Assembly: GCF_006345805.1 (NCBI RefSeq)
Contig: NW_021823779.1
Coordinates: 1 to 21,396 of the forward strand
Length of the DNA: 21,396 bases
Reading direction: 5' to 3'
From: Octopus sinensis
Taxonomy: Eukaryota
Part shown: positions 1,297 to 21,396 of the stretch, piece after piece
Position numbering within the stretch: the first letter of the stretch is position 1
Layout: each line of letters starts with the position of its first letter
The notes under the pieces: model-generated
The model's database searches: none
What the model was told of the DNA's origin: nothing
The model's input: the letters and a program-made list of their open reading frames with translations, nothing else
Position numbers and translations under genes: made by a program

Positions 1297-1336
<40 letters not shown>

Positions 1337-1340
1337 TATA
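931..1340. repeat. Probable interspersed repeat remnant ending in an (AAT)n tract (paralogous copy at 12075-12447)
   Basis: A ~350-bp element shared by both copies, flanked by microsatellites. It resembles an octopod repeat I recall; family not assigned. Confidence 0.35.
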
Positions 1341-1700
1341 ACAGGACATAATAACAGGCGTCTTTCGACTGGAGACAAATTGAATTCGTCTGGCGTGTTG
1401 GGAATTAAGCCTTACGGCAGAGGGAAGGGAGTCGCTGTAGCAGTGACCGTGGTCAAACGAAAAAGAGCTAACGGTTAGCGAACGGTCACGTGAGCATAGA
1501 AGAGAGAGAGTAAAAGGAACAAAGGAACCAAAGAGGGAGAGAAGAGAGAGAAAAAATTGGAAGAAAGTTATTAAGGAGGGGAGAAGAGAGAGAGAGCGAG
1601 AGAGAGTGTAGACGGAAGAATCAAGGAGTGGTGAGAAAAAAAGAGATACTGACACAGTGAAGGGCAAAGTAAGAAAGGCAAAGAAATGTGAGAGAGGGGA
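1340..1700. promoter_or_regulatory. Candidate promoter/5'-UTR region: relatively GC-rich block with a TCACGTGA E-box followed by a GA-rich tract
   Basis: GGTCACGTGAGC (CACGTG at 1487-1492; 13351-13356 in copy B) and TGACCGTGGTCA are conserved in both copies. A donor-like AAA|GTAAGA lies near 1668 in both. No transcript evidence. Confidence 0.3.
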
Positions 1701-1803
1701 AAGAGAGTGTGTTGAAGAAGTCGTTCAAAATTTAGTGACCTGTGTACTTACATATAAGAGAACAAAGTGTACGTACGCCACAATACATATATATATATAT
1801 AAT

Positions 1804-1851
<48 letters not shown>

Positions 1852-2556
1852 TGTGTATCATCTTCTCTTTGTGAAAGGGATAAGTAATGGGTTGTGTAAA
1901 ACATATGAACGACTTTGTGGCGATATTTGTCAAAACATGCAGCTACACTTCTCATCGACAAAATCTTACAGCAATTACTCTTTCAAACTGTTGCTGTCAT
2001 CTATCATGAAGATACTCTGCCCGATTGCAATGCCAAGTGCAGGATACGAGATGTGTACTGTCAGCATATTTCGCGGAAGCCTTAAAACATCACAGAAAAT
2101 GCTTTTTGGTATTTATTCAGGCTTCTATATTCTGAGTTCGAATCCCTGCATTTCAACTGTTCTTTCCCTCATTTTTGAGACGATAAAAAAGGTTCCAATA
2201 TTCCCCACCCCCTTTCCGATATTCGTAGAAACTTGAGGTCGTTTAATTAACGTCCAGAAATTATGACAGTTTCTAACACGATTTTTGACCTTAGGTAGCA
2301 ACTGTTATTTGCTCTTTGCTTATCCCTAGAAACTACGCAGAATGAATAATATTTCCTCCAGACATTCATGTCCTTAATAGAAAATGTATCACTTTGAAAG
2401 CATTGATGTCAAGGCACAAAAGCAAAGTGTGAAGATATAAATTTCGATATAGGTGGAAGTGATGTTTTCTAATTACAAATTCAGACAGCTGGACGAAGTG
2501 CACTGCGGGTTAGTAAATATTGCATCTCAAAATATTAATCGAATTGATGATGCTTA

Positions 2557-2676
2557 TACATACACACGTACATACATGCATAAACACATACACACATACA
2601 TACATAGATACATAAATACATACATACATACATACATACATACATACATACACACATACATACATACATACATACA

Positions 2677-2707
<31 letters not shown>

Positions 2708-2776
2708 GTACATACACACATACATACATAGATACATACATACATACATACATACATACATACATACATACATACA

Positions 2777-2807
<31 letters not shown>

Positions 2808-2844
2808 GTACATACACACATAGATACATACATACATACATACA

Positions 2845-2877
<33 letters not shown>

Positions 2878-3048
2878 TCATACATACATACATACACACA
2901 TACATACATAGATACATACATACATACATACATACATATGTACATACACACATACATACATAGATACATACACACATACATACATACATACATACACACA
3001 TACATACATACACACATACATACATAGATACATACATACCTACATACA

Positions 3049-3081
<33 letters not shown>

Positions 3082-3251
3082 TCATACATACATACATACA
3101 CACATACATACATACATACATACGACACACATACATACATACATATGTACATACACACATACATACATAGATACATACACACATACATACATAGATACAT
3201 ACATACATACATACATACATGCATGCATGCATACATACATACATACATACA

Positions 3252-3286
<35 letters not shown>

Positions 3287-3308
3287 GTATTTTTATATGT
3301 ATATATGC

Positions 3309-3348
<40 letters not shown>

Positions 3349-3425
3349 TGTGGATATGTATGTATACACACACACGCGTACGCACACACACATATATATA
3401 TATATATATGTGTGTTTGTGTGTGT
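2557..3425. repeat. (ATAC)n/(TA)n compound microsatellite
   Basis: Directly visible. The paralogous tract at ~14285-14492 is much shorter. Confidence 0.95.
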
Positions 3426-5149
3426 ACCGAAAAAGAGAAAACACAAGGTGTGTACATTCAAGAATAGAAAGAAACGACAGCTTGAGTAAGCAAAGTTTAA
3501 CGGTGGTCAGTGTATAACTAGCATTACACAACCCTCATCAACCACTTTGAACTTTGCACAAGAGAAAGTCTACTGAGCTGTTTGTAAAATACCGTTCGAA
3601 TCTAACTAGTATGTATCATTTAAATTATTCTTTGAGGCTGTATGTGATTAAGTAATAGCATTCGACAGAGTATGTTATGGAAATGATGATGATGGTAGAG
3701 CTTATACCGTTTGTTGCCTGTTTGCATGTGTACAATCCAAGAGAGAGATACCGGAATGATTTACTGATTTTCACTTTACATCTCATCGATTGTATTTGAT
3801 GAAAGGGAATCAGTTGACCCCTTAAGTTTTGGATGAAGTCGGGCTTTTCTAAATAAATTTTTTAATTAACATAAATCGTTTGCTAGGAAACAAGTGAACC
3901 TATTTTGGCTGGATGTTTGTGTTATACGTTTCTTATTATTTTACAAAAGATTTTCCCATTTTCTTACTTTATGTCAAAACATTCTCATCCAACAAACTGC
4001 TGATCTTTGCTACACTGGCCAACTGCTACCCTCTTTTCCATGGAACACTATTTGAACAATTTTGCTATCCGTGGGTTGCTGTTTGTATTGAGTTGATTGA
4101 CCATTATTCTTTGTTTTAAATCGTGTAAATATATTCTGGTTCTGGAGTAGCCTTGTCATAATAGTCAAAACAATGTGTTTTTCATATAGCGTTTTTACTG
4201 GGGGGGGGGGCGTGTGTGTGTCTATGTGTGTCTGTGTGTCTGTGTGTGTCTGTGTGTCATTGTGTCCGTGCGTGAGAGTTCGGTAACAACGCTATATCTA
4301 AAGATGAATGTAGGATGTTGAAGATATTTTTTGACAGTTAGTGAATACTGTCCCGTATTTAGAGCAAAGCCGACATGCATAACCTTCTTCTGATATGAGA
4401 CGTATACCTGGAGTACTTCTTCATCGATTCTTCGCTTAGTTTTTCTTTGCCCAGATTAGTCGTTGACATCCCTCAAAAATAAAAACAATAGTAAGGCCAT
4501 TAATTAAAAGAGATACGTAACATAATGCTCTTCCAGAAAGTATTGTATTTATAAAGATATACATGATAATCATATTTCTATGTGAGGATAACATGACACA
4601 TGTATTCAGCATCAAGCAATTGTATTTAGTTATGTATAGTCGTAGATTGTTAGATATCAGTGCAACAGTTTATACAGTGAAATGTGCTGGAAAGTATTAT
4701 TTGGGTTTAAGAAAACAGTGAAAATACATTTGACTGAGTGCATTTCACATACAACATTCCTTTAACTGCGAACTGACAAACATCTCATAATTATTTTGAT
4801 TGCAGAAATAAAAATAATATAGCTATAGAAGCTAGATATACTTGAAGTAAAAATATTTCATTCACTGTTAACAATATGGGGAATATTTAAGGACAAATGC
4901 TTCGAAGACATCATCGTCGCATAATTTATATATTCACATTTGTAATTAAATCTAGATTAGTTCTATAGATGCAATTAAATTAGTCATATTACTTATTGTT
5001 TAAATTGTACATCTTGGATTTTTAGTGAAATATATTTGAACAGCTCAAAGATAATTGTTACCTAAATTTCAGCTGTAGACTTTTGCTTAATTTCTAAGAA
5101 AAATACTTTTGTATTAATCACTCTCGTTATATGTGTCTATCATCAGGTG

Positions 5150-5213
5150 ATGAAAGGTACCAGCGTCCTATTGTTTTGTGTATTCATTTCATACACCTTC
5201 TCGGATAAACAAG
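5150..5213 (+). CDS. Knottin-like precursor gene A, coding exon 1 (signal peptide MKGTSVLLFCVFISYTFS-DKQ)
   Basis: Acceptor ...tctatcatcag| at 5146, ATG at 5150, donor AAG|GTAAGT at 5214 (phase 1). Basic n-region, hydrophobic core and T-x-S c-region. Frame and splice sites are conserved in copy B. Confidence 0.8.
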
Positions 5214-5493
5214 GTAAGTATAATCAGAAATTTCTTTTATTTTATAGCAATCCGAAATGTAGTGGGAGAAAAGGCGGAAAATAGAAGGGCGGGAAGGAGG
5301 AAAATGAATAACGTTAACTTAACGGTCTTTCGGGTGTACCCCATTTATATGCAATTACAGCTTTTAAATAAATAACTCAATTTAGCAACACTACGCATAG
5401 ACCAAGTATACGGAGTTAAGATTCATTTAATTAACAATATGAATGATACAAATCGGGAAGGATTCTAGTGGTGTGCTCTCATCTCTTACTCCT

Positions 5494-5577
5494 GTATTTG
5501 ATTCAGAACGTAAACACAAACGAAAGGACACTGAACACCTTGCTCGTCCTGCTAACCATTCTGCCAGCTCTCCGCCG
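5494..5577 (-). mobile_element. Decayed 5' head of SINE family B (paralogous copy ~16814-16897)
   Basis: ttcagaacgta...gctaaccattctgccagctc matches the head of the copies at 8525-8743 and 16381-16598. Confidence 0.55.
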
Positions 5578-5958
5578 CCCTTAGAATTCTTAATTATTAA
5601 AATAATTACAGAAGAGATTCAGCAAGTGCTGTATATATAATGTTTCACGTGTCTTTTGTTTGTTTGTTTTTTTTTGTCATTCCTTTTTATTGCTCCTTTG
5701 GGTTTTTTAATCTCCTTTTATGTATAAAAAACATCCATCACTACAGTGATGAGCCATATTTAAGTGTAGGAGTGAGGAACTTCGAGTTCCAGTCTTCCTG
5801 ATCCTGCATCCTGTTTCAAATCGTCTTACCATAAATACGTTTTCCTCTATTCAATGAATTACCTGTTGAGTGATGCATGGGTAATTTGTGTATTTCTACA
5901 CGAAACTTTGGTAAATAGACTTCTAATGCTTTCATATGTATTTTAATATTTCTTTCAG

Positions 5959-6019
5959 ATGTCGCTTCCGTCCATCAACAGAGAGGAGCTTCTGTAGGTT
6001 TAAGTAATATGACTAAAAG
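5959..6019 (+). CDS. Knottin-like precursor gene A, coding exon 2 (propeptide DVASVHQQRGASVGLSNMTK[R])
   Basis: Strong acceptor atttctttcag| and donor AAG|GTAAGA. 61 nt, phase 1 in and phase 2 out, open in frame with exon 1. Conserved in copy B. Confidence 0.8.
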
Positions 6020-6231
6020 GTAAGATCTACATATCTACATATGTTATCGAATTAATAGACAAGCGCCCTCTAGTAAGGTTTCAAAGCTTGTGTCTATAGT
6101 AGTGAGGTCATCAATATTGGCGCAGTTTTTTTCTTCCAACCCATTCCTGATTGTAGTTTTGGTGTAAAAGAGAATATGAAACTGGAATATATCAAGTGAG
6201 ACGATAGGAGAAAATTTTCACGAGTGATATA

Positions 6232-6535
6232 GGCGTAGGAGTGGCTGTGTGGTAAGGAGCTTGCTTACCAAACACATGGTTTCGGGTTCAGTCCCACTGC
6301 ATGGCAACTTGGGCAAGTGTCTCCTACTATAATCTCGGTCGACCAAAGCCTTGTGAGTGGATTTGGTAGACGGAAACTGAAAGAAGCTCGTCGTATATAT
6401 GTATTTATATATATAGGTGTGTGTATAAGTTTGTGTGTCTGTGCTAACCCCTACCCCCAATATCGCATGACAACCGATGCTTGTGTGTTTACGTCCCCAC
6501 AACTCATAGGTTTTGCAAAAGAGACATAATAAATA
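6232..6535 (+). mobile_element. tRNA-derived SINE family A (GGCGTAGGAGTGGCTGTGTGGTAAG... head, B-box-like GGTTCAGTCCC)
   Basis: Several related copies in the window (7813, 8199, 17545, 19481). A/B-box-like head and an internal (TA)/(TG) tract. Confidence 0.85.
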
Positions 6536-6613
6536 ACTACACTTATGCGATAAGCAATGGTCACTATGAGAAAAAAATTAGTTCATAAAAATAGATACTT
6601 TTCACTATCAACA

Positions 6614-6676
6614 CACCACCACCACCACCACCACCATCACCACCACCACCACCATCACCACCACCACCACCATCAC
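6614..6676 (+). repeat. (CAC)n trinucleotide repeat; only a short remnant in copy B (~18160-18185)
   Basis: Directly visible. It produces the poly-His in ORF 6557-6928, which is not considered coding. Confidence 0.9.
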
Positions 6677-7812
6677 AGCAGCAGCATTCTCATTCTCTCT
6701 CTCTCCCTCGTATTCTCTTTTTCTCTCGTTCTTCGCCTCTCCATTCAGCTCACCAATCAACGCATTTGGCTTAACTATATCATTTCTTCCTCTCTTTTTC
6801 TTCACACCTCCCTCTCTCTCTCTCTCCTTCTCAGCCTTACTCCACCTCGCACCCACTCCACCTTCAGCTTTCGAACTAATCTATCTCTATATAAAGCTGA
6901 AGTTGTCTGTGCGTGGCAGGTTTGGTAGCCTTCAACTAACACTATCTCCTCCGAGACCCTGTGGCGCAATTTGACCAAAATTAAGGGTATGATAGAAGAA
7001 GGCTTGCTCTTCCTTCCGTAGAAGAAGAAATTCAAATCGGGCAATGTTAACACCAAAAATTATTTACATCACAAAGGTGCGTTTTTTTCTATGAAAATCC
7101 CTACTTTTTACGATTATTTGACTGCCGTGTCGCCATTTTTCCGTGTATTTCAACCAGAAAAATGTTCACTTAAAGAGGATAAAAAACTACATAATGCAAA
7201 ATTTTTACTTTTCAAAAATTCTAATTCTAAAGGGTCGAAACAAAGCCGAGCAACGCAGAGACATATTGCTAGTTAATATATAATGGGCGAACGAACAAGT
7301 AGATTATCATAGAGATATGTGTTTGCATGTGCGCGTATATTTGCCGTTCTTGGATTGCACAATTTGTGATGTAATGTAACGGTCACTTACACAAACACAA
7401 GAGAGGTTGATCTTCATATTCATATTACTATTTTCTTGGAGAGACAGATAAACCAAAGTAACCAGATTTGAAAATCATATAAAGGTTAAGATTCCCATAT
7501 CAAATGTTATTTTCAAAATGGAGGATTGTTTTGTCTCTTCTTTTGGAAACGTCGTTTTCATATCTCATTTAGGATGCGTAGAGAAGTACATAGGACAAAC
7601 CAACATGACCGTAACAAAAGAAATGATACCACATACAATGCAGGTTTGATTTCCCAGTTGCAGACGAGAAACTCTCGGGTAAAATCTGCTGAGATTCATG
7701 AATCAAAATTTTAACTTATTAATTTATGTCACAACAGTGACGATAAATTCTAACATAGAGGATCTATAAGACTTAGGCTGATTGAAGAATATCGGGGGGG
7801 GTGATTTAAAAG

Positions 7813-8196
7813 TAGACACAGAGGCTGTGTGATAAGTAGCTTTCTTACCACAATTACATGGTTTCGGGTTCAGTCCCATTGCGTGGCAACTTGGGAATTT
7901 GACTCCTACAATAGCCTCGGCCGACAAAAGCCTTGTGAGTGGATTTGGTAGACGGAAACTGAAAGAAGCTCGTCGTATATATGTATTTATATATGTAGGT
8001 GTGTGTATAAGTTTGTGTGTCTGTTTGTCCCATCCTCCAATATCACTTGACAACCGATGATGGTGTGTTTACGTCCCCACAACTTATAGGTTCGGGAAAA
8101 GAGACCGATTGAATAAGTACTTGGCTTACAAAGAATAAGGCCTAGGGTAGATTTGCTCGTCTAATGGCGGTACTCCACAGTCAAATGACAGAAACA
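7813..8196 (+). mobile_element. SINE family A, near full length
   Basis: Same head and body as 6232-6535, plus the 3' part ...cggttcg..aaaagagaccgat..gaataagtact...cagtcaaatgacagaaaca. Confidence 0.85.
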
Positions 8197-8198
8197 TT

Positions 8199-8287
8199 AC
8201 CTTGGGTAATTGTGTTCTACCATAGCCTCGTAATGACCAAAGCTTTGTGAGTGGATTTAGTATACGGAAACAGAAAGAAGCTCGTCG

Positions 8288-8359
<72 letters not shown>

Positions 8360-8481
8360 ATGTATATACTGTCCTCCTAAAATCGCTTGATAACCGATTT
8401 GGGTGTGTTTTCTTCAGCGTAACGTAGCGGTTCGGCAAGAGATAAGATAGAATAAGTACTAGGCAAGTCCTGGTGGCGATT
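8199..8481 (+). mobile_element. SINE family A, 5'-truncated, with internal (TA)n
   Basis: accttggg...atagcctcg...tgtgagtggattt...gaaagaagctcgtcg matches the family A body. Confidence 0.75.
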
Positions 8482-8524
8482 ATTAACAGACATACATCAA
8501 TACCCAACTTCTTACTTCTCTTCT

Positions 8525-8743
8525 AACTATTCATTTCTACTCTAGGTACAAGGCCCGATATGTTGGGTGAGTGGGCCATTCTTTTAGATCGACCCTAGTA
8601 TGCAACTGGTACATAATTTATCAACCCCGAATGGATGAAAGGCAAAGTCGACCTCGGCGGAATTTGAACTCAAAACCTAGTTGCAGACGAAATACCTCTA
8701 AGCATATCGCCCGGCGTGCTAACGATTCTGCCAGCTCACAGCC
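8525..8743 (-). mobile_element. tRNA-derived SINE family B (left arm of an inverted pair)
   Basis: The reverse complement matches 8796-9012 (gagctggcagaa.cgttagcacgccgggcg...gagttcaaattccgccgaggtcgactttgcctttcatcc). Confidence 0.85.
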
Positions 8744-8795
8744 TTTCCCCTCTATCTATTAACACCATTTATTTATTAATTACCCTGACACTAAT

Positions 8796-9012
8796 GCGGT
8801 GAACCGGCAGAAACGTTAGCACGCCGGGCGAGGTGTTAAGCGGTATTTCGTCTGTCTCTACGTTCTGAGTTCAAATTCCGCCGAGGTCGACTTTGCCTTT
8901 CATCCTTTCGGGGTCGATAAATTAAGTACCAGTTATTTACTGGGGTCGATCTATTCGACTTGCCCCACTCCCCCAAAATGTCGGGCCTTGTACCAAGACT
9001 AGAAAAGAATAG
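8796..9012 (+). mobile_element. tRNA-derived SINE family B (right arm of an inverted pair)
   Basis: B-box-like GAGTTCAAATTCC and central gcctttcatcctttcggggtcgataaattaagtacc. Several copies in the window. Confidence 0.88.
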
Positions 9013-9285
9013 CCATATCACTGTCTACATCTACTTATCTACTTATGAAATTCGGAAAATATATATTCATAGACTTGGTCTTTAAAATATACTGGAGAAA
9101 GTACAAATGACAATTTTTGAAAGAACGAAAAAATATGACCCGTCCTATTTGTTTCGGTTCTGCATGCTGTACGTTCACATCCCGTTGGATTTTCTCGACG
9201 TCAATAAAATATAACAGCTTCTTCCCTAACGAGAAAACATAATTTAATGAGTTTCATACTTCACTACAATATTCTGTATTTATAG

Positions 9286-9475
9286 GGTCGCTTGCTCAAT
9301 GGATAATTGTCGCAGATATCTGCCAGTCATTCACTGCTGCCCACATATGGCATGTATTTGCACTTTATCGAGTTGCTGGTGTAGAACACAAAATAAAAGC
9401 CGCGCCACTCATAATAGTATGCTCCAAAGTGTAATCGCTATTCTCGTTTTCCTTGTAAATTTACCAATTTATTGA
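9286..9475 (+). CDS. Knottin-like precursor gene A, coding exon 3: 8-Cys ICK-like domain plus hydrophobic C-terminal tail
   Basis: Acceptor tattctgtatttatag| at 9285. The phase-2 join AG+G gives Arg, completing KR immediately before VACSMDNCRRYLPVIHCCPHMACICTLSSCWCR... Cys spacing is C-x4-C-x8-CC-x4-C-x-C-x4-C-x-C; stop TGA at 9473-9475. Missed by the ORF track because the internal-ATG ORF is only 58 aa. Confidence 0.83.
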
Positions 9476-9604
9476 CGTCCTGCTCTTTTGAATCTTGTGG
9501 ATATATGTCATGGGTCAGATTGTTTGTATAGAAGGAGAAAATCTACTATTTTTCTATTTTGTAATTTAACCAATCGTCAAATCCTATGATAGTAGAAAAC
9601 TATG

Positions 9605-9610
9605 AATAAA
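9605..9610 (+). promoter_or_regulatory. Candidate polyadenylation signal for gene A (another AATAAA at 9851-9856)
   Basis: AATAAA 130 nt after the stop codon. The sequence is AT-rich, so it could be chance. Confidence 0.35.
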
Positions 9611-10121
9611 CATCAAGAGACATAGTGTAATATAAAATATCAACGAGCAGAAGTTTGATTTTGTAATTTATCCTGGAAAGAAATTCACGTATGTTGCACC
9701 AAAAACTGAAATGGTAAAAGAAGAGAAAATCTGCAAACCATAACTTACAACTGTGACTTTTCTTACAAACCTAAATTAATACGACGAACGTATTTAATAT
9801 CTAATATATTTATGTTATTATTCCGTCAAATTTTAATGAAATCTCAATTAAATAAATTTATTAAAGCATTACAAATACTTAGTGCTTCGTTTTTCACTGT
9901 GCTATTTGTTTGTAAGTTACTGAACGGTAACAAAGTCTTTGTGGTTTCTTCTTCGCTGTGGTGTTTGCCTTTAAGTTATCGATATGAATGGTAAGACTTT
10001 ACATTGCAGCGTTATGCTATATTATTGTAAAAACATATATTCTCCGAGTTCTATTTTATAACATTTAAAAAAGAAATGGGAAAAAAATAAGAGATAAGAA
10101 AGGAAAAGAGAGAAAAACAAC

Positions 10122-10725
10122 TTAACCAGTAGAAATTGAGGGGAGAGTCGATTGTTCACATAACCCAGAACGAATAGTGTGCTCAGCTGGGCCTCGCAGT
10201 AGTGACTCTGATGGCTTTGCCGCGAAGAACGTTGCAGCAGCCACTTCCTGAGGCTCATTAATCCAATGGGCCGCCTTCATCCCTCTGCTGGGAATGAAGT
10301 CCAAGAACACCTGAGGTCTTGACGTAACCGGTACAAACTGACAGTAGCCAGTGAGGACCAAATATTTCTTAAATGTTCTCTCCTCATGATTATGGAAGGT
10401 GACACCCGGGTTTGCAGCCGTTGCAGCAAGGTTGGTTCCTTGTCAAAAATATTTAGTGATATTTTGGTGTTGTTCATCGGACAATCGTAGTCGAGCAGAC
10501 AGGTGATTGAATTATGATCGATAGGTGATTGAGTTATGATCACTTATAAATTCGTTTTGAAAGATATAATGTGTATAAGTTCCCTCTGTGCGCTCTGTCG
10601 TTCCATTCTTAAGAAGGCGGCAACTTGATACGATGATGGGTTTTCAGTAATTCGTTGCCAGGCGAGTGATCACGATGTCTTCCGCATCTCCTTGACTGAG
10701 GTTGCAAAATTGAACAAAGTATGTC
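10122..10725 (-). pseudogene. Decayed ORF-like segment, possibly retroelement ORF1 debris
   Basis: GC-richer than its flanks. Minus-strand frames give protein-like text broken by stops and by a 22-bp tandem duplication (10501-10541). Family not recognised. Confidence 0.3.
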
Positions 10726-10734
10726 AAATAAATA

Positions 10735-10809
10735 AATACATACACACAAATATGTATAAATATAAATATATATATATATATATATATAGATAGATAGATA
10801 TATAGATAA

Positions 10810-10864
<55 letters not shown>

Positions 10865-11004
10865 CATGCACATATATATATGTTTTATGTATATACATAT
10901 GTCTCACTCTGTCTCTGTCTCTCTCTCAATATATATTTATATACATATATATATATAATTATATATATATATAAGTGCATACATGCATACATGCATAGAA
11001 ATAG

Positions 11005-11041
<37 letters not shown>

Positions 11042-11095
11042 ATATGCGTGCATACATACATACATGCATACATGCATAGAAATATATATATAATT
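10735..11095. repeat. Compound (TA)n/(GATA)n/(TACA)n microsatellite
   Basis: Directly visible. Confidence 0.95.
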
Positions 11096-11213
11096 AATAA
11101 TACCAAAGGTTAATTTGAAATATTTCCATGACCTGAGGCCTAGCATGTAGTAAATTTACCCAATGGACTATATATTACTCATATAAATACAGTGTACATT
11201 TAAACACAAAAGA

Positions 11214-11848
11214 GGTATCCATCATAGGACTACCTGCACGCTAGAAAGGACAGATAAATTCCAAACCACTATTCGGGATAAAATTTAGAATGGAAAGAAA
11301 AACTAAACATTTACCTTCTTATACCTGGACCAATGGTTTCAGACGTTTTTTAGCAAATAAAATAATTTGCTAGGCGAAGGCTTCTTCAGCTGGTACAACT
11401 TAGATTAAATATATATACACGAGGCAATCCAGTATCTGCCTCGTGCTTATACATTCTAATATTTTCAAATCTACCGCGCAAGTGCAGCTCCCTCTCGGCA
11501 GTCAGTAAACATTGCAGCTTTTTATTTCGAAAATTATCCAAGAAATAATTTATCACTAATTAATAATTTTAAAGTGTAATCTGAAATATTAGAAATTTCC
11601 AATACCAGTGGCCTATCGTGTAAAACATTTACTCAATAGACTAGATATTATTCATATAAATGCAGTGTACATTTAAACACAAAAGAGGTATCCATCATAG
11701 GGATACCTGCACGCTAGAGAGGACAGTCATTAGGGAAAAATTTCGAATGTAATGAAAGTATAACATTTACCATTCGAAATTTTATCACTAATAGTGGTTT
11801 GGAATTTAACTGTCATCTCTAGCGTGCAGGTACCCTATGATAGGTACC
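11214..11848. mobile_element. Foldback/MITE-like structure with ~80-bp inverted repeats (11214-11293 vs 11770-11848) and an internal direct copy of the left arm (11687-11749)
   Basis: ggtatccatcataggactacctgcacgctagaaaggacagataaattccaaaccactattcgggataaaatttagaatgg aligns with the reverse complement of 11770-11848. No clear TSD seen. Confidence 0.6.
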
Positions 11849-11851
11849 CTA

Positions 11852-11852
<1 letters not shown>

Positions 11853-11897
<45 letters not shown>

Positions 11898-11898
11898 A

Positions 11899-11944
<46 letters not shown>

Positions 11945-11945
11945 A

Positions 11946-11989
<44 letters not shown>

Positions 11990-12075
11990 ATATGTATGTA
12001 TGTAAATATATATGTATGTGTATAAATATATATATATATGTGTATATCATATATATATATATGCATATATATATA
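11853..12075. repeat. (TA)n/(TATG)n microsatellite at the junction before duplication copy B
   Basis: Directly visible. Confidence 0.95.
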
Positions 12076-12447
12076 CATATAAAATACAAATTGGAAAAGA
12101 ATGCAAAACATCCGGACAACTAGGTGATACATAAAGGGACAACAAAACATCCAGATAGACGATACAAAAAAAAAGGTCGGATCATTTGAAGCATTTAATT
12201 TTCAGTCAAGAACCGTATCATCCTCGCAATCTCGGCTGATTAATCTTGAGATTACTTCAATCTGGCCAGCCCCAAGGAAAACTAAGCTATGAGCATTTGA
12301 TTCTTTGGAGATAAGCATCAAATTTATACGAAACAGGTACGGAAAAACGGACGATATTACACGAATATAAATACAAAAATAATACAAAAAACAGTAACGA
12401 TATCAACAACAATAATAATAATGATAATAATAATTATAATAATAATT

Positions 12448-12813
12448 AAAAGTATATGTATTTGGAAAAAGTATATGTATTTCTGAAGGGAGCTAACTTC
12501 TCGTCGACAACCATATTGTCACACGCGATGAAGGTAAACCCTTGAAACTCGGGTCCGTGTGTATCATGAGTTGAAGACGGGAGGATGACTCCCCTTCACA
12601 ATACTGAGAGGACACAGATAGTGTGTCTATAGCCAGCTGGAGGAGATATCTTCCTGGGGCTACAAACTACAGTAGCATCCACCCTTAAGGTTAGCCATAT
12701 TCAAATGGTAAATATGCGTCACGATGTGTTACCGCTACTGTTTATAACTCGCTCTGAGATTTATCATTGTTTAATAATATAATAATAATAATATAATAAT
12801 AATAATATAATAC

Positions 12814-12852
<39 letters not shown>

Positions 12853-13095
12853 AATAATGGATAATAATACTAATACTAATTATAATAATAATAATATTTT
12901 TTTATTTGTTTATTTATTTATTATATTTTTATTTTTTTATTTTGTATTAGACATTCACTAGTACAACACAAAAAACACACAAAAAAAAACAAACAAAAAA
13001 CCCCATTATGGCACAGAACTTCCAACCTGTTGTCTCTTGAGGTCTCTGGTGAGACTTGGAGCCAACTTTTACAGACATAAGCAAAAGTCAAACAG
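12448..13095 (+). mobile_element. Copy-B-specific insert: probably two retroposon 3' ends, each followed by an (AAT)n tail
   Basis: Absent from the paralogous (AAT)n tract at 1281-1340. Two non-repetitive segments (12448-12770 and ~12950-13095) each end in AAT repeats. Confidence 0.45.
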
Positions 13096-13124
13096 AATAA
13101 TAAATAATAATAATATAATATAAT

Positions 13125-13156
<32 letters not shown>

Positions 13157-13606
13157 TAATAATAATATATAATAATAATAATAATAATAATCATCATAAT
13201 AATAACAGGACATTGTAACAGGCGTCATTTGACTGGAGACAAATTGAATTCAGCTGGCGTGTTGAGTATTAAGCCTTACGGCAGAGGGAGGGATGTCGAT
13301 GTGGCAGTGACCGTGGTCAAACAAAAAAGGGCTGACGGTCGGTCAACGGTCACGTGAGCGGAGAAGAGAGAGAAAAAAGAGTAACAAAGGAACCAAAGAG
13401 GGAGAGAAGAGAGAGAGTGTGTGCAGACGGAAGAATCAAGGAGTGGTGAGAAAAAAAGAGAGATAGTGACACGGAGAAGGGTAAAGTAAGAAAGGCAAAG
13501 AAATGTGAGAGAGGGGAGAGGGAGAGTGTTAAAGAAGTCGTTCAAAATTTAGTGACCTGTGTACTTACATATAAGAGAACAAATTGTACGTACGCCACAA
13601 TACATA

Positions 13607-13657
<51 letters not shown>

Positions 13658-13682
13658 ATTATATTATATATATATATATATT

Positions 13683-14122
13683 TAAGTAATACTAAGCAAT
13701 AAAGGGTTTAGCAACGAATTGCCTTACCACATACCGATTTAGAAATAGCAGTCAAAAGTTATAGCTATTTCTTCTACTAAAAAGGAGATCTCAGTAAAAA
13801 CAGCAATTGGAAGGCAGACACAAACAGGTAAGAGAGAATGAATTGACGGCATCTATCATACATTTTAAGTTATCTACGGACGTACGTTTCGAAATCAAGT
13901 TTTTAGGAAAGCATAAGAATTAAATATTAAATAATTCTATCTCACCAAAACTTCTTTTCTCTTCAGCGTAGAATACTATAATCATAAATGATTATATATT
14001 GAATTTTGAGATACTAGAAGGCACCAACTCAACTCAGTATCAGAGCGAGCTAGAATCCGCAACTAGTATCACCAAATCCAATGTGTGAATGAAAAGATTG
14101 TGTCACCAGCCCCTTCCCACCC
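13683..14122. other. Copy-B-specific ~440-bp segment between TA microsatellites, probably an interspersed repeat
   Basis: No counterpart in copy A between ~1790 and 1850. Confidence 0.45.
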
Positions 14123-15283
14123 TATATATATATATATATATATTTATAGTTGTGTGTGTGTGTGCTTATGTTTCTGTGTCATCTTCTATTTGTGAAAAAG
14201 ATAAGTAATGGGTTGTGTAAATTATATGAACGACTTTGTGGCGATATTTGTCAAAACATGTAGCTACACTTCTCATCGACAAAAATACACACATGCATAC
14301 ATACATACGTACATACATACATACATACATACATACATTACATACATACGGACGTACATACTTGCATACATACATATATACATATATATATTTATATATA
14401 TATGTATATGCATGTGGTTGTATGTATGTATACACACACGCGCACGCACACACACAGATATATATATATATATTATATAGATGTGTGTGTGTGTAAAGAA
14501 TAAGTGAAAACACAACGTGTACAACTTCAAGAATAGAAAAGAAAACGACAGCTGGAGCAAAAAAAGTTTAACGGTGGTCAGTGTATAACTGGCACTACAC
14601 AACCCTCATCAACCAGTTTGAACTTTGCACAAGAGAAAGTCTACTGAGCTGTTTGTAAAAATACCGTTCGAATCTAACAAGTATGTAACATTTAAATTAT
14701 TCTTTGCGTCTGTATGTGATTAAGTAATAGCATTCGATAAAGTATGTTATGGCAATAAGGATGGTGGTAGTGGCAGAGCTTAAACCGTTTGTTGCCTGTT
14801 TGCATGTGAACAGTCCAAGATCTGCAAAGAGAGAGGATAACCGGAATGATTTTCTGATTTTCACTTTACATCTCATCGATTGTATTTGATGAAAGGGAAT
14901 CAGTTGAGCCCTTCAGTTTTGGATGAAGTCGAGCTTTTGTAAATTTTATTTTTTGATTAACGTAAATCGTTTGCTAGGAAAAAGTGAACCTATTTGGCTG
15001 GAGGTTGTGTTATTCATTTCTCATTATTACAAAAGATTTTCCCATTTCTTACTTTATGTCAAAACATTCAATCCAAACAAACTGCTGATCTTTGCAACAC
15101 TGGCCAACTGCTTCCCTCTTTTCCATAAAACACTATTTGACCAATTTTGCTATCCGTAGGCTGCTGTTTGTATTAAGTTGATTGACCATTTTTCTTTGTT
15201 TAAAATCGTGTGAATATATTCTGGTTCTGGAGTAGGTTTTTCATAGCAGTCAAAACTATGTGTTTTCATATAGAGTTTTTAGT

Positions 15284-15335
<52 letters not shown>
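15284..15335. repeat. (GT)n microsatellite
   Basis: Directly visible. The paralogous tract at ~4198-4270 is interrupted. Confidence 0.95.
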
Positions 15336-15336
<1 letters not shown>

Positions 15337-16214
15337 TGTGCGTGCGTGTTTGGTAACAATGCTATATCTAAATGATGAATGTAGAATCTTGAAGATATTT
15401 TTTGACAGTTACTGAATACTGTCCCGTATTTAGAGCAAAGCCGACATGCATAACCTTCTTTTGATATGAGACGTATACCTGGGGTACTTCTTCTTCGATT
15501 CTTCGCTTAGTTTTTCCTTGCCCAGATTAGTCGTTGACATACCTCATAAATAAAACAATACTAAGACCATTAATTAAAAGAGACACGTAATATGATGCTC
15601 TTCCAGAAAGTATTGTATTTAAAAAGATAACGATAAACATGTGTCTCTGTGAGGATTATATGACACATTTATTCCGCACCAAACAAATGCATTTAGTCAT
15701 GTATTGTCTCAGATTGTTAGATACCAGTGCAACATTTTATAAGTGAAATGTGCAGGAAAGTTTGATTTGGGTTGAAGAAAACAGAGAAAATACATTTGAC
15801 TGAGTGCATTTCGCATACAAGATTCCACCAACTGCGAACTTACAAACATCTCATAATTGTTTTGATTGCAGAAATAAAAATAATATAGCTATAGAAGCTA
15901 GATATACTTGAAGTAAGAATATTTCATTCACTGTTAGCAATATGGGGAATATTTTGGACAAATGCTTCGAAGACGTCATCTTCTCCTAAATTATATATTC
16001 ACATTTGTAATTAAATCTAGATTAGTACTATTGGTGCAATTAAATTAGCCATATTACTTATTGTTTAAATGGTAAATCTTGGATTTTTAGTGAAATATAT
16101 TTGAACAGCTAAAAGATAATTGTTACCTAAATTTCAGCTGTAGATTTTTGCATATTTCTAAGAAAAATGCTTTTGTATTAATCACTCTCGTTATATGTGT
16201 CTATCATCAGGTGC

Positions 16215-16281
16215 ATGATGAAAGGCAACAGTGTCCTATTGTTTTGTGTATTCATTTCATACACCTTCTCGGATAAACGAG
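16215..16281 (+). CDS. Knottin-like precursor gene B, coding exon 1 (MMKGNSVLLFCVFISYTFS-DKR)
   Basis: Paralogous to 5150-5213. Acceptor at 16210, donor GAG|GTAAGT at 16282, frame intact. Confidence 0.75.
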
Positions 16282-16380
16282 GTAAGTATAATTAGAAATT
16301 TCTATTATTTTATAGCAATCCGAAATGTAGTGGGAGAAAAGGCGGAAAATAGAAGGGCGGGAAGGAGGAAAATGAATATA

Positions 16381-16598
16381 TATTTCTTTACTACCCACAA
16401 GGGGCTAAACTTAGAGGACAGACAAACGGATTAAGTCGATTACATCGACCCCAGTGCGAAACTGGTACTTTTATTTATCGCCCCGAAAGGATGAAAGGCA
16501 AAGTCGACCTCGGCGGAATTTGAACTCAGAACGTAACGACAGACGATATACCGCTAAGCATTCCGCCCGGTACGCTAACGTGTCTGCCAGCTCGCTCT
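16381..16598 (-). mobile_element. SINE family B insertion with a 15-bp target-site duplication (AGGAAAATGAATATA, 16366-16380 and 16599-16613)
   Basis: Perfect 15-bp flanking direct repeats; the empty site is present in copy A at ~5298-5310. Confidence 0.92.
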
Positions 16599-17271
16599 AG
16601 GAAAATGAATATAGTTGCCTTAACGGTGTTTCGGGTGTACCCCATTTATATGCAAATACAGCTTTTAAATAACTAACTCTATTGATCAAAACTACGCATA
16701 GACCAAGTATAGGAAATTAAGATTCTTCTATATAATATATAACATTTAATTAACAACATGAATGATACAAATCGGGAAGGTTTCTAGTGGTGTGCTCTCA
16801 TCTCTTACTCCTGTATTTGATTCAGAACGTAAACACGAACGAAAGGACACTGAATACCTTGCTCGTCGAGCTTACCATTCTGCCAATATTCCGCCACCCT
16901 TAGAATTCTTAATTATTAAAATAATTACAGAAGATATTCAGCAATTGCTGTATATATAATGTTTCACGTGTCTTTTGTTTGTCTTCTTGTCATTCCTTTT
17001 TATTGCTCCTTTAGTTTTTTTTATCTCCTTTTATGTATTAGAAACATACATCACTACAGAGATGAACCATATTTAAGTGTAGGAGTGAGGAACTTCGAGT
17101 TCCAGTCTTCGTGATCCTGCATCTTGTTTCAGATCGTCTTACCATAAATACGTTATCCTCCATTCAATGAATTACCTGTTGGGTGCTTCATGGGTAATTT
17201 GCGTATTTCTACACGAAACTTTGGAAAATAGACTTCTAATGCTTCCATATGTATTTCAATATTTCTTTCAG

Positions 17272-17332
17272 ATGTCGGTTCCATCCGTCAACAGAGAGGA
17301 GCTTCTGTAGGTTTGAGTAATATGACTAAAAG
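17272..17332 (+). CDS. Knottin-like precursor gene B, coding exon 2 (DVGSIRQQRGASVGLSNMTK[R])
   Basis: Paralogous to 5959-6019, with identical splice sites and length (61 nt). Confidence 0.75.
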
Positions 17333-17544
17333 GTAAGATCTTCATATCTACATATGTTATCGAATTACTAGACAAGCGCCCTCTAGTAAGGTTTCATGGC
17401 TTGTGTCTATAGTAGAGCGGTCATCAATATTGGCGATATTCCATTCTTTAGACTCATTCCTGATTGTAGTTTTGGTGTAAAAGAGAATATGAAACGGGAA
17501 TATTTCAAGTGAGACGATAGGAAAAAAATTTCACGAGTAATATA

Positions 17545-17772
17545 GGCGTAGGAGTGACTGTGTGGTAAGGAGCTTACTTACCAAACACATGGTTCCGGGT
17601 TCAGTCCCACTGCGTGGCAACTTGGGCAGGTGTCTCCTACTATAGCCTCGGGCTGACCGAAGCCTTGTGAGTGGATTTGGTAGACGGAAAGGAAAGAAGC
17701 TCGTCGTATATATGTATTTATATATGTAGGTGTGTGTATATGTTTGTTCCACGTCCCAATATCGCTTGACAA
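17545..17772 (+). mobile_element. SINE family A (paralog of 6232-6535) with its 3' part replaced by an unrelated insert
   Basis: Matches family A up to ...atatcgcttgacaa. Confidence 0.85.
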
Positions 17773-19480
17773 TACCAGATGAATGAATTTGGTCGAGGAA
17801 AAGTGAATGGAATTCAATAATATATATCTACTATAGAGACCTGTCCAAATTCCACGGAATTGGAAATAGTAAGAGGACCTGTTTATGAGAGAAAGGAGTA
17901 TTCTTTAAACATTCTTGACGTTTGTCTGCATCCATTTCCTCACGTCATCGACTGCATTATTTTTACCTGTTTCCCCCTCTGATCCGTGCTCCATGTCTGC
18001 TCATTCTTTCTCGAGCAGCTTGTAACTGTATTTCCTGGGAATCCAGAGTTGGCCTTTATAAGCGAGCACATAATAAATATCTACACTTATGCGATAAGCA
18101 ATGGTCACTATGAGAAAAAAAATTAGTTCATAAAAATAGATACTTTTCACTATCAAAACACCTCCACCACAACCCCCACCGTCACAGCAGCTGCGTCTTT
18201 TTCCCTATCTCTCTCTCACACTCTCTCTCTCTCTATCTCTCTTTCTCTCCCTCTCAATCGTGTTCTCTTTTTCTCTCGTTCTTCGCCTCACCCTTCAGCT
18301 CACCAACCAACGCATTTGTCTTAATTATATTAATATTACTCACTTCTCTCTACTTCTTCTTCTCTTTTTCTTCACTCCTCCCTCTCTCTCTTCTCCTCAG
18401 TCTTACTCCACCTCGCACCTACTCCACCTTCAGCTTTCGAACTAATCTATCTCTGTATAAAGCTGAAGTTGTCTGTGCGTGGCAGGTTTGGTAGCCTTCA
18501 ACTAACACTATCTCCTCCGAGACCATTCGGCGCAAGTTGAGCAAAATTGAGAGTATGATAGAAGAAGGCTTGCTCTTCCTTCCGTAGAAGAAAAAATTCA
18601 AATCAGGCTATTTTAACACCAAACATTTTTTACATCACGAAGGTGCTTTTTTCTTCTATGATAATCCCTACTTTTTACGATATTTTGATTGCTGTCTCGC
18701 AAGTTTTCCATGTATTTCAACCAGATAAATGCTCACTTAAAGTTAATAACAAACTACATAATGCAAAATTATTACTTTTCAAAAGTTCTAATTCTAAAGG
18801 GTCGAAACATAGCCGAGCAACGCCGAGCGATACTGCTAGTTAATATATAATGGGCGAACGAACAAGTAGATTATCATAGAGATATGTGCTTGCATGTGCG
18901 CGTATATTTGCCGTTCTTGGATTGCACAGTTTGTGATGTAATGTAGCGGTCACCTACACAAACACAAGAGAGGTTGATCTTCATATTCATATTACTATTT
19001 TCTTCCAGGCTAATTTAGCCAAAACTATATACACAAATGTGACATGGTATACAGCTTCAAGAACTTAAGCATTTACTCATAAACAGACATTAATGTTCAT
19101 TTTAATTGATACAGAGGTAAATAAACCAAAGTAACCAGATTTGAAAATCATATAGAGGCTAAGATTCCCATTTCAAATGTTATTTTCAAGATTGAGGATT
19201 TGTTTTGAGTCTTCTTTTGGAAACGTCGTTTTCATATCTTATTTAGGATGTGTAGAGAAGTACATAGGACAAACCACAATGACCGTAACAAAAGAACTGC
19301 AGGTTTGATTCCCCAGTTGCAGACGAGAAAATCTCGGTTAAATTTTGCTGAGATTCATGAAACAAAATTTTAATTTATTAATTTATGTCAGAATAGTGAC
19401 GATAAATTCTAACATAGAGGATCAATAAGACTTAGGCTGATTAAAGAGTATCGGGGGGGGGGGGGGAGATGGCATTTAAA

Positions 19481-20830
19481 AGTAGACAGAGTGGCTGTGT
19501 GATAAGTAGCTTGCTTACCACAACTACATGATCTGCTGAGATTCATGAATCGAAATTTAATTTATTGATTTATGTCACAAAGTGACGATAAATTACAACA
19601 TAGAAGATAACTGGGCTGACCAAATCTTTGTGAGTGGATTTTGTAGACGGAACTGAAAGAAACTCGTCGTAATATGTATGTATGTATGTATGTACGTAGT
19701 ATGTATGTATGTATGTATATGTATTATGTATGTATGTGTGTGTGTGTGTATGTATTGTATGTATGTATATGTATGTATGATGTAGTATATGTATGTATGT
19801 ATGTATGTGTGTGTGTGTGTGTATGTATGTATGATGTATGTATGTATGTATGTGTGTGTGTTGTGTATGTATGTATGTATGTATGTGTGTGTGTAGTATG
19901 TATGTATGTATGTATGTATGATGTATGTATGCATGCATGTATGCATGCATGCATGTATGTGTGTGTTGTGTATGTATGTTGTATGCATGTATGTATGTAT
20001 GTATGTATGTATGTATGTATGTATGTGTGTGTGTATGTATGTATGTATGTATGTATGTAGGTATGTATGTGTGTGTGTGTGTATGTATGTATGTATGATG
20101 TATGTATGTGTATGTATGTATGTATGTGTGTGTGTATGTATGTATGTATGTATGTATGTATGTATGCATGCATGCATGTATGTATGTATGTATGTGTGTG
20201 TGTATGTATGTATGTATGTATAGTATGTATGTATGGTATGTATGTATGCATGTGCATGCATGCATGTATATGTATGTATGTGTGTGTGTTGTGTGTGTTG
20301 TATGTTATGTATGTATGTATGTATGTATGTATGTGTATGTATGTATGTGTATGTGTGTGTGTGTGTATGTAGTATGTATGTATGTATGTATGTATGTATG
20401 ATGTGTATGTGTGTGTGGTGTATGTATGTATGTATGTATGTATGTAGTATGTTTGTGTGTGTGTATGTATGTATGTATGTGTATGTAGTGGGTGGATGTA
20501 TGATGTATGTATGTATGCATGCTGCATTCATGCATGCATGCATTCATGCATGCATGCATTCATGCATGCATGTATGTATGTATGTATGTATGTATGCATG
20601 CATGCATGCATTATGTATGTATGTATGTATGTATGTATGTATGTATGCATGCATGCATGTGTATGTATGTATGTATGTATGTATGTATGTATGTATGTAT
20701 GTGTATGTATGTATGTATTGTCCTCCTAACATCGTTTGATAACCGATCCTGGTGTGTTTTCATCCCCGTAACGTAGCGGTTCGGCAAGAGATAAAGATAG
20801 AATTAGTACTAGGCAAGTCTTGGTGGCGAT
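19481..20830 (+). mobile_element. Rearranged SINE family A sequence (head 19481-19530, body from ~19610) with a greatly expanded internal microsatellite
   Basis: The head matches 7811-7860. The body and 3' end match 8222-8481. Confidence 0.7.
19673..20718. repeat. ~1-kb (TATG)n/(TG)n/(TGCA)n microsatellite
   Basis: Directly visible; source of all ORFs between 19570 and 20776. Confidence 0.95.
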
Positions 20831-20877
20831 TATTAACTGACATACATCAATACTCAACTTATTACCTTCCTTCTAAC

Positions 20878-21093
20878 TATTCTTTTCTACTCTTTGTACA
20901 AGGCCCGAAATGATGGGGGAGTGGGCCAGTCGATTAGATCGACCCCAGGACGCAACTGGTACTTAATTTATCGAACCTGAAATGATGAAAGGCAAAGTCG
21001 ACCTCGGCGGAATTTGAACTCAGAACGTAGCGGCAGACGAAATACCTCTAAGCATATCGCACGGCGTACTAACGATTCTGCCAGCTCACAGCC
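20878..21093 (-). mobile_element. SINE family B, left arm of an inverted pair (paralog of 8525-8743)
   Basis: Colinear with copy A. Confidence 0.85.
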
Positions 21094-21145
21094 TTTCCCT
21101 TATAACTATTAAAACCATTTATTTATTAATTACCCTGTCACTAAG

Positions 21146-21368
21146 TCGGTGAACCGGCAGAAACGTTAGCACGCCGGACGAGGTGTCAAGCGGTATTTCG
21201 TCTGTCTCTACGTTCTGAGTTCAATTCCGCCGAGGTCGACTTTGCCTTTCATCCTTTCGGGGTCGATAAATTAAGAACCAATTGTTTACTGGGGTCGATC
21301 TATTCGACTGGCCCCCTCCCCCCCCCAAAAAAAAATTTCGGGCCTTGTGCCAAGAGTAGAAAAGAATT
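21146..21368 (+). mobile_element. SINE family B, right arm of an inverted pair (paralog of 8796-9012)
   Basis: Colinear with copy A. Confidence 0.85.
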
Positions 21369-21396
21369 ACCATATCGCTGTCTACATCTACTCATC

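Follow-up and report, generated by a model that had tools for sequence, protein, structure and literature searches.

Gene A of Octopus sinensis belongs to a diversifying tandem family of knottin-like peptide genes, most likely descended from a duplicated CCWamide/agatoxin-like peptide gene

The 21,396-nucleotide (nt) stretch of Octopus sinensis DNA analysed here in full (contig NW_021823779.1, forward strand; hereafter the window) contains a three-exon gene, termed gene A, whose predicted product is a 104-amino-acid (aa) precursor with a signal peptide, a pro-region, an eight-cysteine domain of the inhibitor-cystine-knot (ICK, or knottin) type and a hydrophobic C-terminal tail. Gene A is an intact member of a tandem family, restricted to Octopus, that is predicted to encode small secretory-pathway peptides. 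The cysteine-rich domain of this family bears the marks of diversifying selection, and the most likely origin of the family itself is a duplicated CCWamide/agatoxin-like peptide (ALP) gene of protostomes. Taken as a whole, this explanation, in which gene A belongs to a diversifying knottin-like array of CCWamide/ALP descent, is the one we favour and consider probable.

Spliced together, the three exons of gene A (Table 1) yield 315 nt without an internal stop, encoding the product MKGTSVLLFCVFISYTFSDKQDVASVHQQRGASVGLSNMTKRVACSMDNCRRYLPVIHCCPHMACICTLSSCWCRTQNKSRATHNSMLQSVIAILVFLVNLPIY (abbreviated MKGTSV...NLPIY*), with cysteines at C45, C50, C59, C60, C65, C67, C72 and C74. The splice donors are GTAAGT at 5214 and GTAAGA at 6020, and the two acceptors, TTTCTTTCAG (up to 5958) and TGTATTTATAG (up to 9285), are both pyrimidine-rich and end in AG. 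Exon 1 (64 nt) ends in phase 1 and exon 2 (61 nt) in phase 2, and intron 2 splits the arginine codon of the KR cleavage site as AAA AG|G. All splice sites of gene A are invariant across its paralogues, and protein models from O. bimaculoides use identical exon junctions. Exon 1 shares 90-100% aa identity with exon 1 of every other family member and is followed by an invariant donor, GTAAGTA, while four copies have exactly the same exon 2 acceptor, TTTCTTTCAG, and donor, GGTAAGA. The splicing pattern and the end-to-end homologues described below thus uphold a preliminary description of this DNA, which had proposed three exons with GT-AG introns in phases 1 and 2, a 104-aa precursor and a KR site created exactly by the exon 2/3 junction. 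We regard this three-exon model as confirmed at the level of the sequence. The proposed gene span of 5147-9475 stands at its end but not at its start, as 5147 begins a GTG, one codon upstream of the ATG at 5150 that is the start common to all homologues. The cysteine pattern C-x4-C-x8-CC-x4-C-x-C-x4-C-x-C is found a single time among the six translated frames of the window and in none of 300 dinucleotide shuffles, and, artefacts encoded by (TG/TATG)n microsatellites aside, the gene A domain is the sole Cys-dense stop-free stretch of the window. In comparison with its paralogues, gene A carries an in-frame 15-nt deletion directly before C1, which is consistent with a maintained reading frame.

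The approximately 110 nt 5' of the gene A start codon (window 5040-5149) are also kept among paralogues and include acceptor-like sequence (TTTCAG, ATCATCAG). As isoforms in O. bimaculoides join an upstream exon at the homologous place, gene A probably possesses an unmapped 5' non-coding exon.

Table 1 Features of gene A, its tandem paralogue gene B and related loci. Positions refer to the window unless preceded by a locus label (L003, O. vulgaris OX597835.1, 7.56-7.64 Mb; L007, O. bimaculoides LOC128250541 locus).
Feature	Position	Strand	Description
Gene A exon 1	5150..5213	+	Start codon and signal peptide MKGTSVLLFCVFISYTFS, likely cleaved before D19; ends in phase 1
Gene A exon 2	5959..6019	+	Pro-region (D)VASVHQQRGASVGLSNMTK(R) with conserved N-x-T sequon; ends in phase 2 within R of KR
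Gene A exon 3	9286..9475	+	First base completes R42; then eight-Cys domain, linker, hydrophobic tail and stop (9473-9475)
Cystine-knot-type domain, C45 to C74	9293..9382	+	C-x4-C-x8-CC-x4-C-x-C-x4-C-x-C; based on Cys conservation, AlphaFold2, Foldseek and dN/dS
Conserved hydrophobic C-terminal tail MLQSVIAILVFLVNLPIY	9419..9472	+	Candidate membrane/GPI-anchor signal or C-terminal propeptide
Polyadenylation signal AATAAA	9605..9610	+	129 nt past the gene A stop; offset of 130 in the O. vulgaris orthologue
Gene B (tandem paralogue) exon 1, MKGNSVLLFCVFISYTFSDKR	16218..16281	+	Homology to family exon 1
Gene B exon 2, (D)VGSIRQQRGASVGLSNMTK(R)	17272..17332	+	Homology to family exon 2
O. vulgaris orthologue of gene A	L003 61803-61866, 62635-62695, 65869-66058		Intact
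LOC128250541 internal donor and fourth exon	L007 31806/31807 -> 32389-32457		Genomic read-through would encode the tail

A search of 5.8 billion proteins with the gene A precursor returned two matches, LOC128250516 X1 and LOC128250514 of O. bimaculoides, both deposited as 'uncharacterized protein'. They are 56% and 52% identical to the precursor, respectively, in alignments that cover 98-100% of its length, with a near-identical signal peptide, all eight cysteines aligned and the hydrophobic C-terminus kept, and their loci (L001 and L002) have three exons as in gene A with invariant splice-site sequences. In O. vulgaris, positions 58314-76017 of locus L003 are collinear with window positions 1307-16500 at 93-96% nt identity, which agrees with the earlier impression of an octopod genome, and the orthologue of gene A found there differs in 8 residues, reflecting 9 nonsynonymous changes and 1 synonymous change. 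L003 comprises at least seven three-exon units within 76 kb, repeated with a period of 9-11 kb. The window likewise holds an 11-kb tandem duplication, in which 3213-9039 matches 14279-21396 at 87-90% identity; it includes the first two exons of gene B, the third of which is expected approximately 250 nt past the window end. Intron 1 of gene B is interrupted by a repeat insertion of about 220 nt (16379-16598). The preliminary description had presented a single hidden gene, and while that gene is real, the hypervariable tandem family around it and the second copy starting at 16218 had escaped notice.

Further members of the family form two O. bimaculoides clusters on CM046622.1, at approximately 29.2 Mb and 36.4 Mb, and an extra O. 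vulgaris member resides on another chromosome (L005; OX597817.1, 141.44 Mb). An exhaustive hidden Markov model (HMM) search of 1.84 billion representatives together with a word-based search placed all family members in just two species, O. bimaculoides and O. vulgaris, a distribution that applies to predicted proteins only; two repeat-rich proteins from non-octopus sources among the HMM matches were judged spurious. No protein identical to the gene A product is on record in the protein searches. A match to a transposon protein, which had been allowed for at the outset, did not materialise: a transposon origin of gene A was rejected, given that no transposable-element domain matched and that the repeat unit is a gene-bearing segmental duplication. 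The expectation that automated annotation could easily miss such a locus is borne out by the deposited O. vulgaris models. CAI9738802 is a 56-kb chimera (L003 10001-66017) that chains exon-2 copies of the array and ends in exon 3 of the gene A orthologue, translated in the wrong frame, CAI9738754 spans 121 kb and is a chimera of exons from many array copies, and CAI9721905 mis-splices the L005 member (L005 10001-15000). In O. bimaculoides, several intact exon-3 cassettes are found behind one signal/pro exon pair (L002 21905-22123, 22872-23090 and 26886-27104; L007 14787-15014 and 31639-31806), and the isoforms of LOC128250541 draw on two different exon-3 cassettes, which suggests alternative mature-peptide exons behind one promoter.

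Comparison of 18 family domains revealed the shared framework C-x4-C-x8-10-CC-x4-C-x-C-x4-7-C-x-C, in which the cysteines are invariant except for the loss of C2 in the O. vulgaris copy at approximately 14 kb in L003 (Ov14k). The ratio of nonsynonymous to synonymous change (dN/dS) at the non-Cys codons of the domain amounts to 3.9 in the O. vulgaris array and 1.7 in O. bimaculoides, with corresponding values of 1.3 and 0.76 for the tail, and the selection test gave Fisher p values of 0.002-0.03 for three separate pairs. Among the window copy and six O. vulgaris copies, mean nt identity drops from 0.86 over the final 400 nt of intron 2 to 0.69 across the Cys domain and rises again to 0.89 for the tail and 0.94 for the 3' flank, the last being 93-94% identical among array copies. 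The segment encoding the mature peptide is thus more diverged than its own intron (0.69 versus 0.86). Divergence of this kind is classically seen where diversifying selection acts on families of ligands, toxins and immune peptides among them. The proportion of differing synonymous sites (pS) is 0.20 in the tail and 3' untranslated region (UTR) versus 0.53 in the Cys domain, a contrast suggestive of either hypermutation focused on the mature region or homogenised flanks. Furthermore, an alignment of exon 3 (window 9293-9475 plus paralogues) showed the cysteine codons to be mostly fixed by position as either TGT or TGC. Position-fixed cysteine codons and conserved synonymous sites outside the mature region are both reported features of conotoxin genes.

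An ICK comprises at least six cysteines with a C-C-CC-C-C core within approximately 30-40 residues, in which C1-C4 and C2-C5 are paired, C3-C8 threads between them, and C6-C7 is added; gene A has the cysteine number and the core of this definition. The AlphaFold2 model of the Cys domain, obtained with a 10-sequence alignment, has a mean predicted local distance difference test (pLDDT) score of 75 and features a beta-hairpin (21-25/30-34) that includes C65/C67 and C72/C74. When this model was compared with the PDB using Foldseek, about 18 of the 25 matches were ICK/knottin peptides, none with E < 0.6, including the agouti C-terminal domain, several spider ICK toxins, tachystatin A, asteropsin, a remipede double-ICK toxin and leginsulin; the closest superposition has template modelling (TM) scores of 0.60/0.67 and a root-mean-square deviation of 1.8 Å over 36 columns. 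Prediction of exon 3 including the tail reached a pLDDT of 68, and its Foldseek matches were mostly meaningless because the tail helix dominated. On the sequence level, the family profile produced eight matches with E < 10 against all PDB sequences, every one of them a spider eight-Cys ICK toxin (best E 0.073), and the gene A sequence on its own had a single weak match (E 0.77). A Pfam scan assigned no family to the gene A precursor or mature peptide, and among 16 members Toxin_7 (PF05980) and Toxin_9 (PF02819) appeared below the gathering threshold in 2 and 1, with E values of 0.017 and 0.038. The likening of the C-C-CC-CxC-CxC framework to agatoxins and other knottins in the preliminary description is therefore well founded, with spider eight-Cys ICK toxins as the only, sub-threshold, PDB profile matches and knottins as most of the Foldseek matches. 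We regard an ICK fold of the gene A domain as likely, though not proven.

In order to place the family among known eight-Cys peptides, we turn to the CCWamides of spiralians, which are the orthologues of arthropod ALPs (Thiel et al. 2021, PMC8557429). CCWamide/ALP genes have three exons, with the eight-Cys peptide in the last, and introns in phases 1 and 2, the second of which interrupts the codon of the final basic residue at the cleavage site after its second nucleotide (PMC8557429), as it likewise does in Lottia CCWa. Gene A displays the same exon layout, the same intron phases and the same split basic codon. The splice sites that we determined for O. sinensis LOC118768477, the canonical CCWamide gene of octopus, show an exon 1 (70 nt) ending in phase 1 and an exon 2 (52 nt) ending in phase 2 within a codon split as CG|A. 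Alignment of a profile of the 18 family domains with one of 24 spiralian CCWamide domains (from the supplement of PMC8557429) by hhalign gave a local probability of 95%, an E value of 2.9e-8 and a score of 33.6. A null in which the cysteines were held fixed and the non-Cys columns shuffled scored 15.8 +/- 3.6 with a maximum of 23.8, and none of the 150 shuffles reached 33.6. Searching 6,124 six-frame open reading frames (ORFs) of the fetched DNA with the CCWamide HMM ranked the true CCWamide exon first and exon 3s of the family next, with E values of 2e-4 to 0.08. Several O. vulgaris paralogues keep a tryptophan in the C6-C7 loop (C-x-W-E..). Intron phases, split codon and profile similarity together link the gene A family to the CCWamide/ALP genes, and descent of the family from a duplicate of such a gene is most likely. 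The kinship with agatoxin-like neuropeptides that had been proposed is accordingly retained with respect to framework, gene architecture and profile similarity, but not as orthology; in our reading, the family is a derived paralogous one and not the CCWamide orthologue. A CCWamide-like fragment within an intron of L005 (approximately 11261-11335) is too weak to use (E 0.9).

A direct comparison illustrates both the relationship and the distance. In CCWamide/ALP genes and in the family alike, the coding sequence is spread over three exons, the first of which carries the signal and the last the mature eight-Cys peptide, and the introns are in phase 1 and then phase 2; a CC-x-G-[LMY]-x-C-x-C motif is also common to both, as is the C-C-CC-CxC-CxC framework. 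However, CCWamide is essentially single-copy and highly conserved, with an amidated aromatic end (..W-G-basic), whereas the family is tandem, hypervariable and without an amidation signal, and adds an extension of approximately 30 residues with the hydrophobic tail; octopus, moreover, retains its separate canonical CCWamide gene.

Several observations weigh against the favoured explanation. The more derived copy represented by gene A itself was not significant with the CCWamide HMM among the 6,124 ORFs. After C74, the gene A product continues with RTQNKSRATHNS and then the hydrophobic tail, with neither a Gly-basic amidation site nor an amidated aromatic end. The C6-C7 loop of gene A, C-T-L-S-S-C, is without an aromatic residue, as opposed to CCWamide (..C-N-L-W..), and the C1-C2 loop of the family is shorter than that of CCWamide (4 versus 6 residues). 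The idea that the canonical CCWamide gene adjoins the array was rejected, as that gene sits on a different, 208-Mb chromosome. There is no significant match to a known knottin, given that Pfam yields none for gene A, PDB profile matches have E >= 0.07 and Foldseek matches have E >= 0.6, and knottin frameworks are known to arise convergently. The dN/dS of the orthologue pair is based on just 10 differences. Conservation of the tail extends to synonymous sites and may thus reflect nucleotide-level constraint or gene conversion and not protein function. Finally, the searches found no transcriptome-derived (Logan) protein of the family, as against one for CCWamide.

The tail itself calls for closer consideration. 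About 30 residues of the gene A product lie beyond C8, the final 18 of which are hydrophobic, are kept in both species and form a helix in the AlphaFold2 prediction, and no dibasic site separating C8 from the tail is conserved in the family alignment. A C-terminal hydrophobic segment without cytoplasmic residues resembles a glycosylphosphatidylinositol (GPI)-attachment signal or a tail anchor. GPI signals combine a triplet of small residues at the omega site, a polar spacer and a hydrophobic tail, the last of which the gene A product has in conserved form. Exon 3 of the L005 member stops two residues after C8 and is thus tail-less, and isoforms X1 and X2 of LOC128250541 in O. bimaculoides splice the tail out by using ACT|GTAAGC as an internal donor and joining it to a small fourth exon, so that tailed and tail-less forms both exist in the family. 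Gene A has a possible internal donor, GTAATC at 9431-9436, at the site homologous to the LOC128250541 donor, and no counterpart of the fourth exon was recognisable in the window. The preliminary description had taken the product to be secreted, with residues 43-75 as the mature peptide. Neither secretion nor this extent of the mature peptide is a safe assumption in view of the tail.

Membrane tethering is the strongest of the alternatives. Here, the tail would serve as a GPI signal or tail anchor and the knottin would modulate channels or receptors on the producing or a contacting cell, in the manner of the Ly6/uPAR 'prototoxins' and unlike a toxin that is freely secreted. The 14-18 hydrophobic residues without downstream charge, preceded by small or polar residues (S-R-A, N-S, N-T-G), favour such an arrangement, as do the retention of the tail in both species, its predicted helix and the lack of a conserved dibasic site between it and C8; the splicing out of the tail in paralogue isoforms also looks as if tailed and tail-less forms differ functionally. 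On the other hand, the residues at the omega site are not consistently ideal, the signal is short, the conservation of the tail includes synonymous sites, and tail-less members such as that in L005 exist. We see tethering as a serious possibility that nevertheless falls short of an even chance. A different challenge concerns ancestry, in that the family might be a convergent or unrelated Cys-rich one whose likeness to CCWamide/ALP and spider toxins reflects the constraint of the knottin framework only. Gene A has no significant direct match to CCWamide or to the Pfam toxin families, the C1-C2 loop and the C-terminus differ, and the canonical CCWamide gene is unlinked. Framework constraint, however, does not sit well with an intron number, intron phases and split basic codon identical to those of CCWamide, with an hhalign score above all 150 nulls that keep the Cys framework, or with the several paralogues that match the CCWamide HMM at E values of 2e-4 to 1e-2, and we therefore consider convergence unlikely.

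It is also conceivable that the gene A copy is silent or decaying within a birth-and-death array, a pseudogene in waiting, as the loss of C2 in Ov14k and the deletions that gene A shows, compared with its paralogues, in the C6-C7 loop and ahead of C1 might indicate. Yet gene A and its O. vulgaris orthologue alike retain an intact ORF, all eight cysteines, all splice sites and the AATAAA, and the indels of gene A are in frame, which makes this prospect quite improbable. Much the same holds for the proposal that the peptides are antimicrobial or immune effectors, similar to knottin-type antimicrobial peptides such as the tachystatins, instead of neuroactive ligands. Tachystatin A is among the Foldseek matches and tandem arrays with dN/dS > 1 are typical of immune peptides as well, but the gene A peptide is only modestly cationic and nothing points specifically to membrane activity, so that we give this proposal little credence.

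Beyond CCWamide, the diversifying knottin-like array that we favour invites comparison with three other systems. Spider eight-Cys ICK toxins (omega-agatoxin-IV, purotoxin and U4-agatoxin) have the same Cys framework and predicted fold, provide the best superpositions and, like the family, are multigene with hypervariable inter-Cys loops. They differ in belonging to another phylum and in having no hydrophobic tail, and their matches to the family are not significant. Conotoxin superfamilies (e.g., the O-superfamily) are molluscan and place signal, pro-region and mature peptide on separate exons, as the family does, and both combine a very conserved signal and UTRs with a hypermutable mature region and position-fixed Cys codons; conotoxins nevertheless have no sequence similarity to the family in their signal or mature parts, and the O-superfamily has six cysteines. 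The resemblance of the exon layout to conotoxin genes noted in the preliminary description is thus genuine, but the CCWamide/ALP genes are the closer parallel. The GPI-anchored Ly6/uPAR prototoxins (Lynx1-type) likewise combine a toxin-like disulfide domain with a C-terminal hydrophobic anchor, an analogy based solely on the predicted tail, and they have a three-finger fold in place of the knottin fold predicted here.

Under the favoured explanation, the signal peptide would be removed after S18, the domain would fold in the endoplasmic reticulum into an ICK with four predicted disulfides, and a convertase of the furin/proprotein convertase (PC) type would cut after K41-R42. The product would act extracellularly as a putative ligand of a channel or receptor, with the tail either holding the knottin on the membrane through a GPI or tail anchor, or being removed or spliced out to release the peptide. 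Diversifying selection across the paralogues may have generated a repertoire of specificities, as in venom, chemosensory and immune peptide families, and the duplicated CCWamide/ALP gene would represent a second, independent expansion of the scaffold after that in spiders. Venom, neuromodulatory, chemosensory and immune roles are all possible for the gene A family, and the part of venom or ion-channel ligand put forward in the preliminary description is a candidate role among these. We hypothesise, more tentatively, that a CCWamide duplicate gave rise to a hypervariable tandem knottin arsenal in parallel with the recruitment in spiders and additionally acquired a spliceable C-terminal anchoring tail and alternative mature exons, a full scenario that we hold to be less likely than not.

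Within intron 2 of gene A, a short interspersed repeat is present as an inverted pair (8573-8745 and 8793-8965; 173-nt arms, 84% complementary), alongside three copies of another repeat ending in (TA)n (6269-6442, 7851-8024 and 8235-8321), and both repeat types recur throughout the related loci. Elsewhere, the window carries long (ATAC)n, (TATG)n, (TA)n and (CAC)21 microsatellites (2556-3345, 19673-20718, 580-935 and 6614-6676), which make long spurious Cys/Tyr/His-rich ORFs that dominate naive ORF or Cys scans.

Literature searches using LOC and CAI identifiers, or octopus with knottin, ICK or CCWamide, retrieved no account of the family or of an octopus ICK peptide. The scaffold is already known and paralogues exist in databases as uncharacterized proteins. 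The earlier remark that gene A was not recognised as a named gene is borne out in that these searches met no description of the family, but its paralogues were already present at NCBI under the label 'uncharacterized protein'. According to a 2026 review, spider U8-agatoxin is the only toxin-type CCWamide derivative, and the CCWamide receptor and function are called unknown (PMC13311285).

Cephalopod venom and signalling peptides are poorly catalogued, and the gene A family, if our explanation is true, would offer a concrete case of short multi-exon peptide genes that annotation pipelines miss or merge into chimeras. A membrane-anchoring tail that can be spliced out and alternative mature exons would be features not described for knottin toxins. 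Should members be expressed in the salivary gland, suckers or nervous tissue, cephalopods would have their first ICK toxins or endogenous tethered channel modulators. A positively selected, CCWamide-derived octopus array would furthermore constitute a second natural experiment in the conversion of a neuropeptide into a diversified repertoire, and would supply natural variants with which to seek the target.

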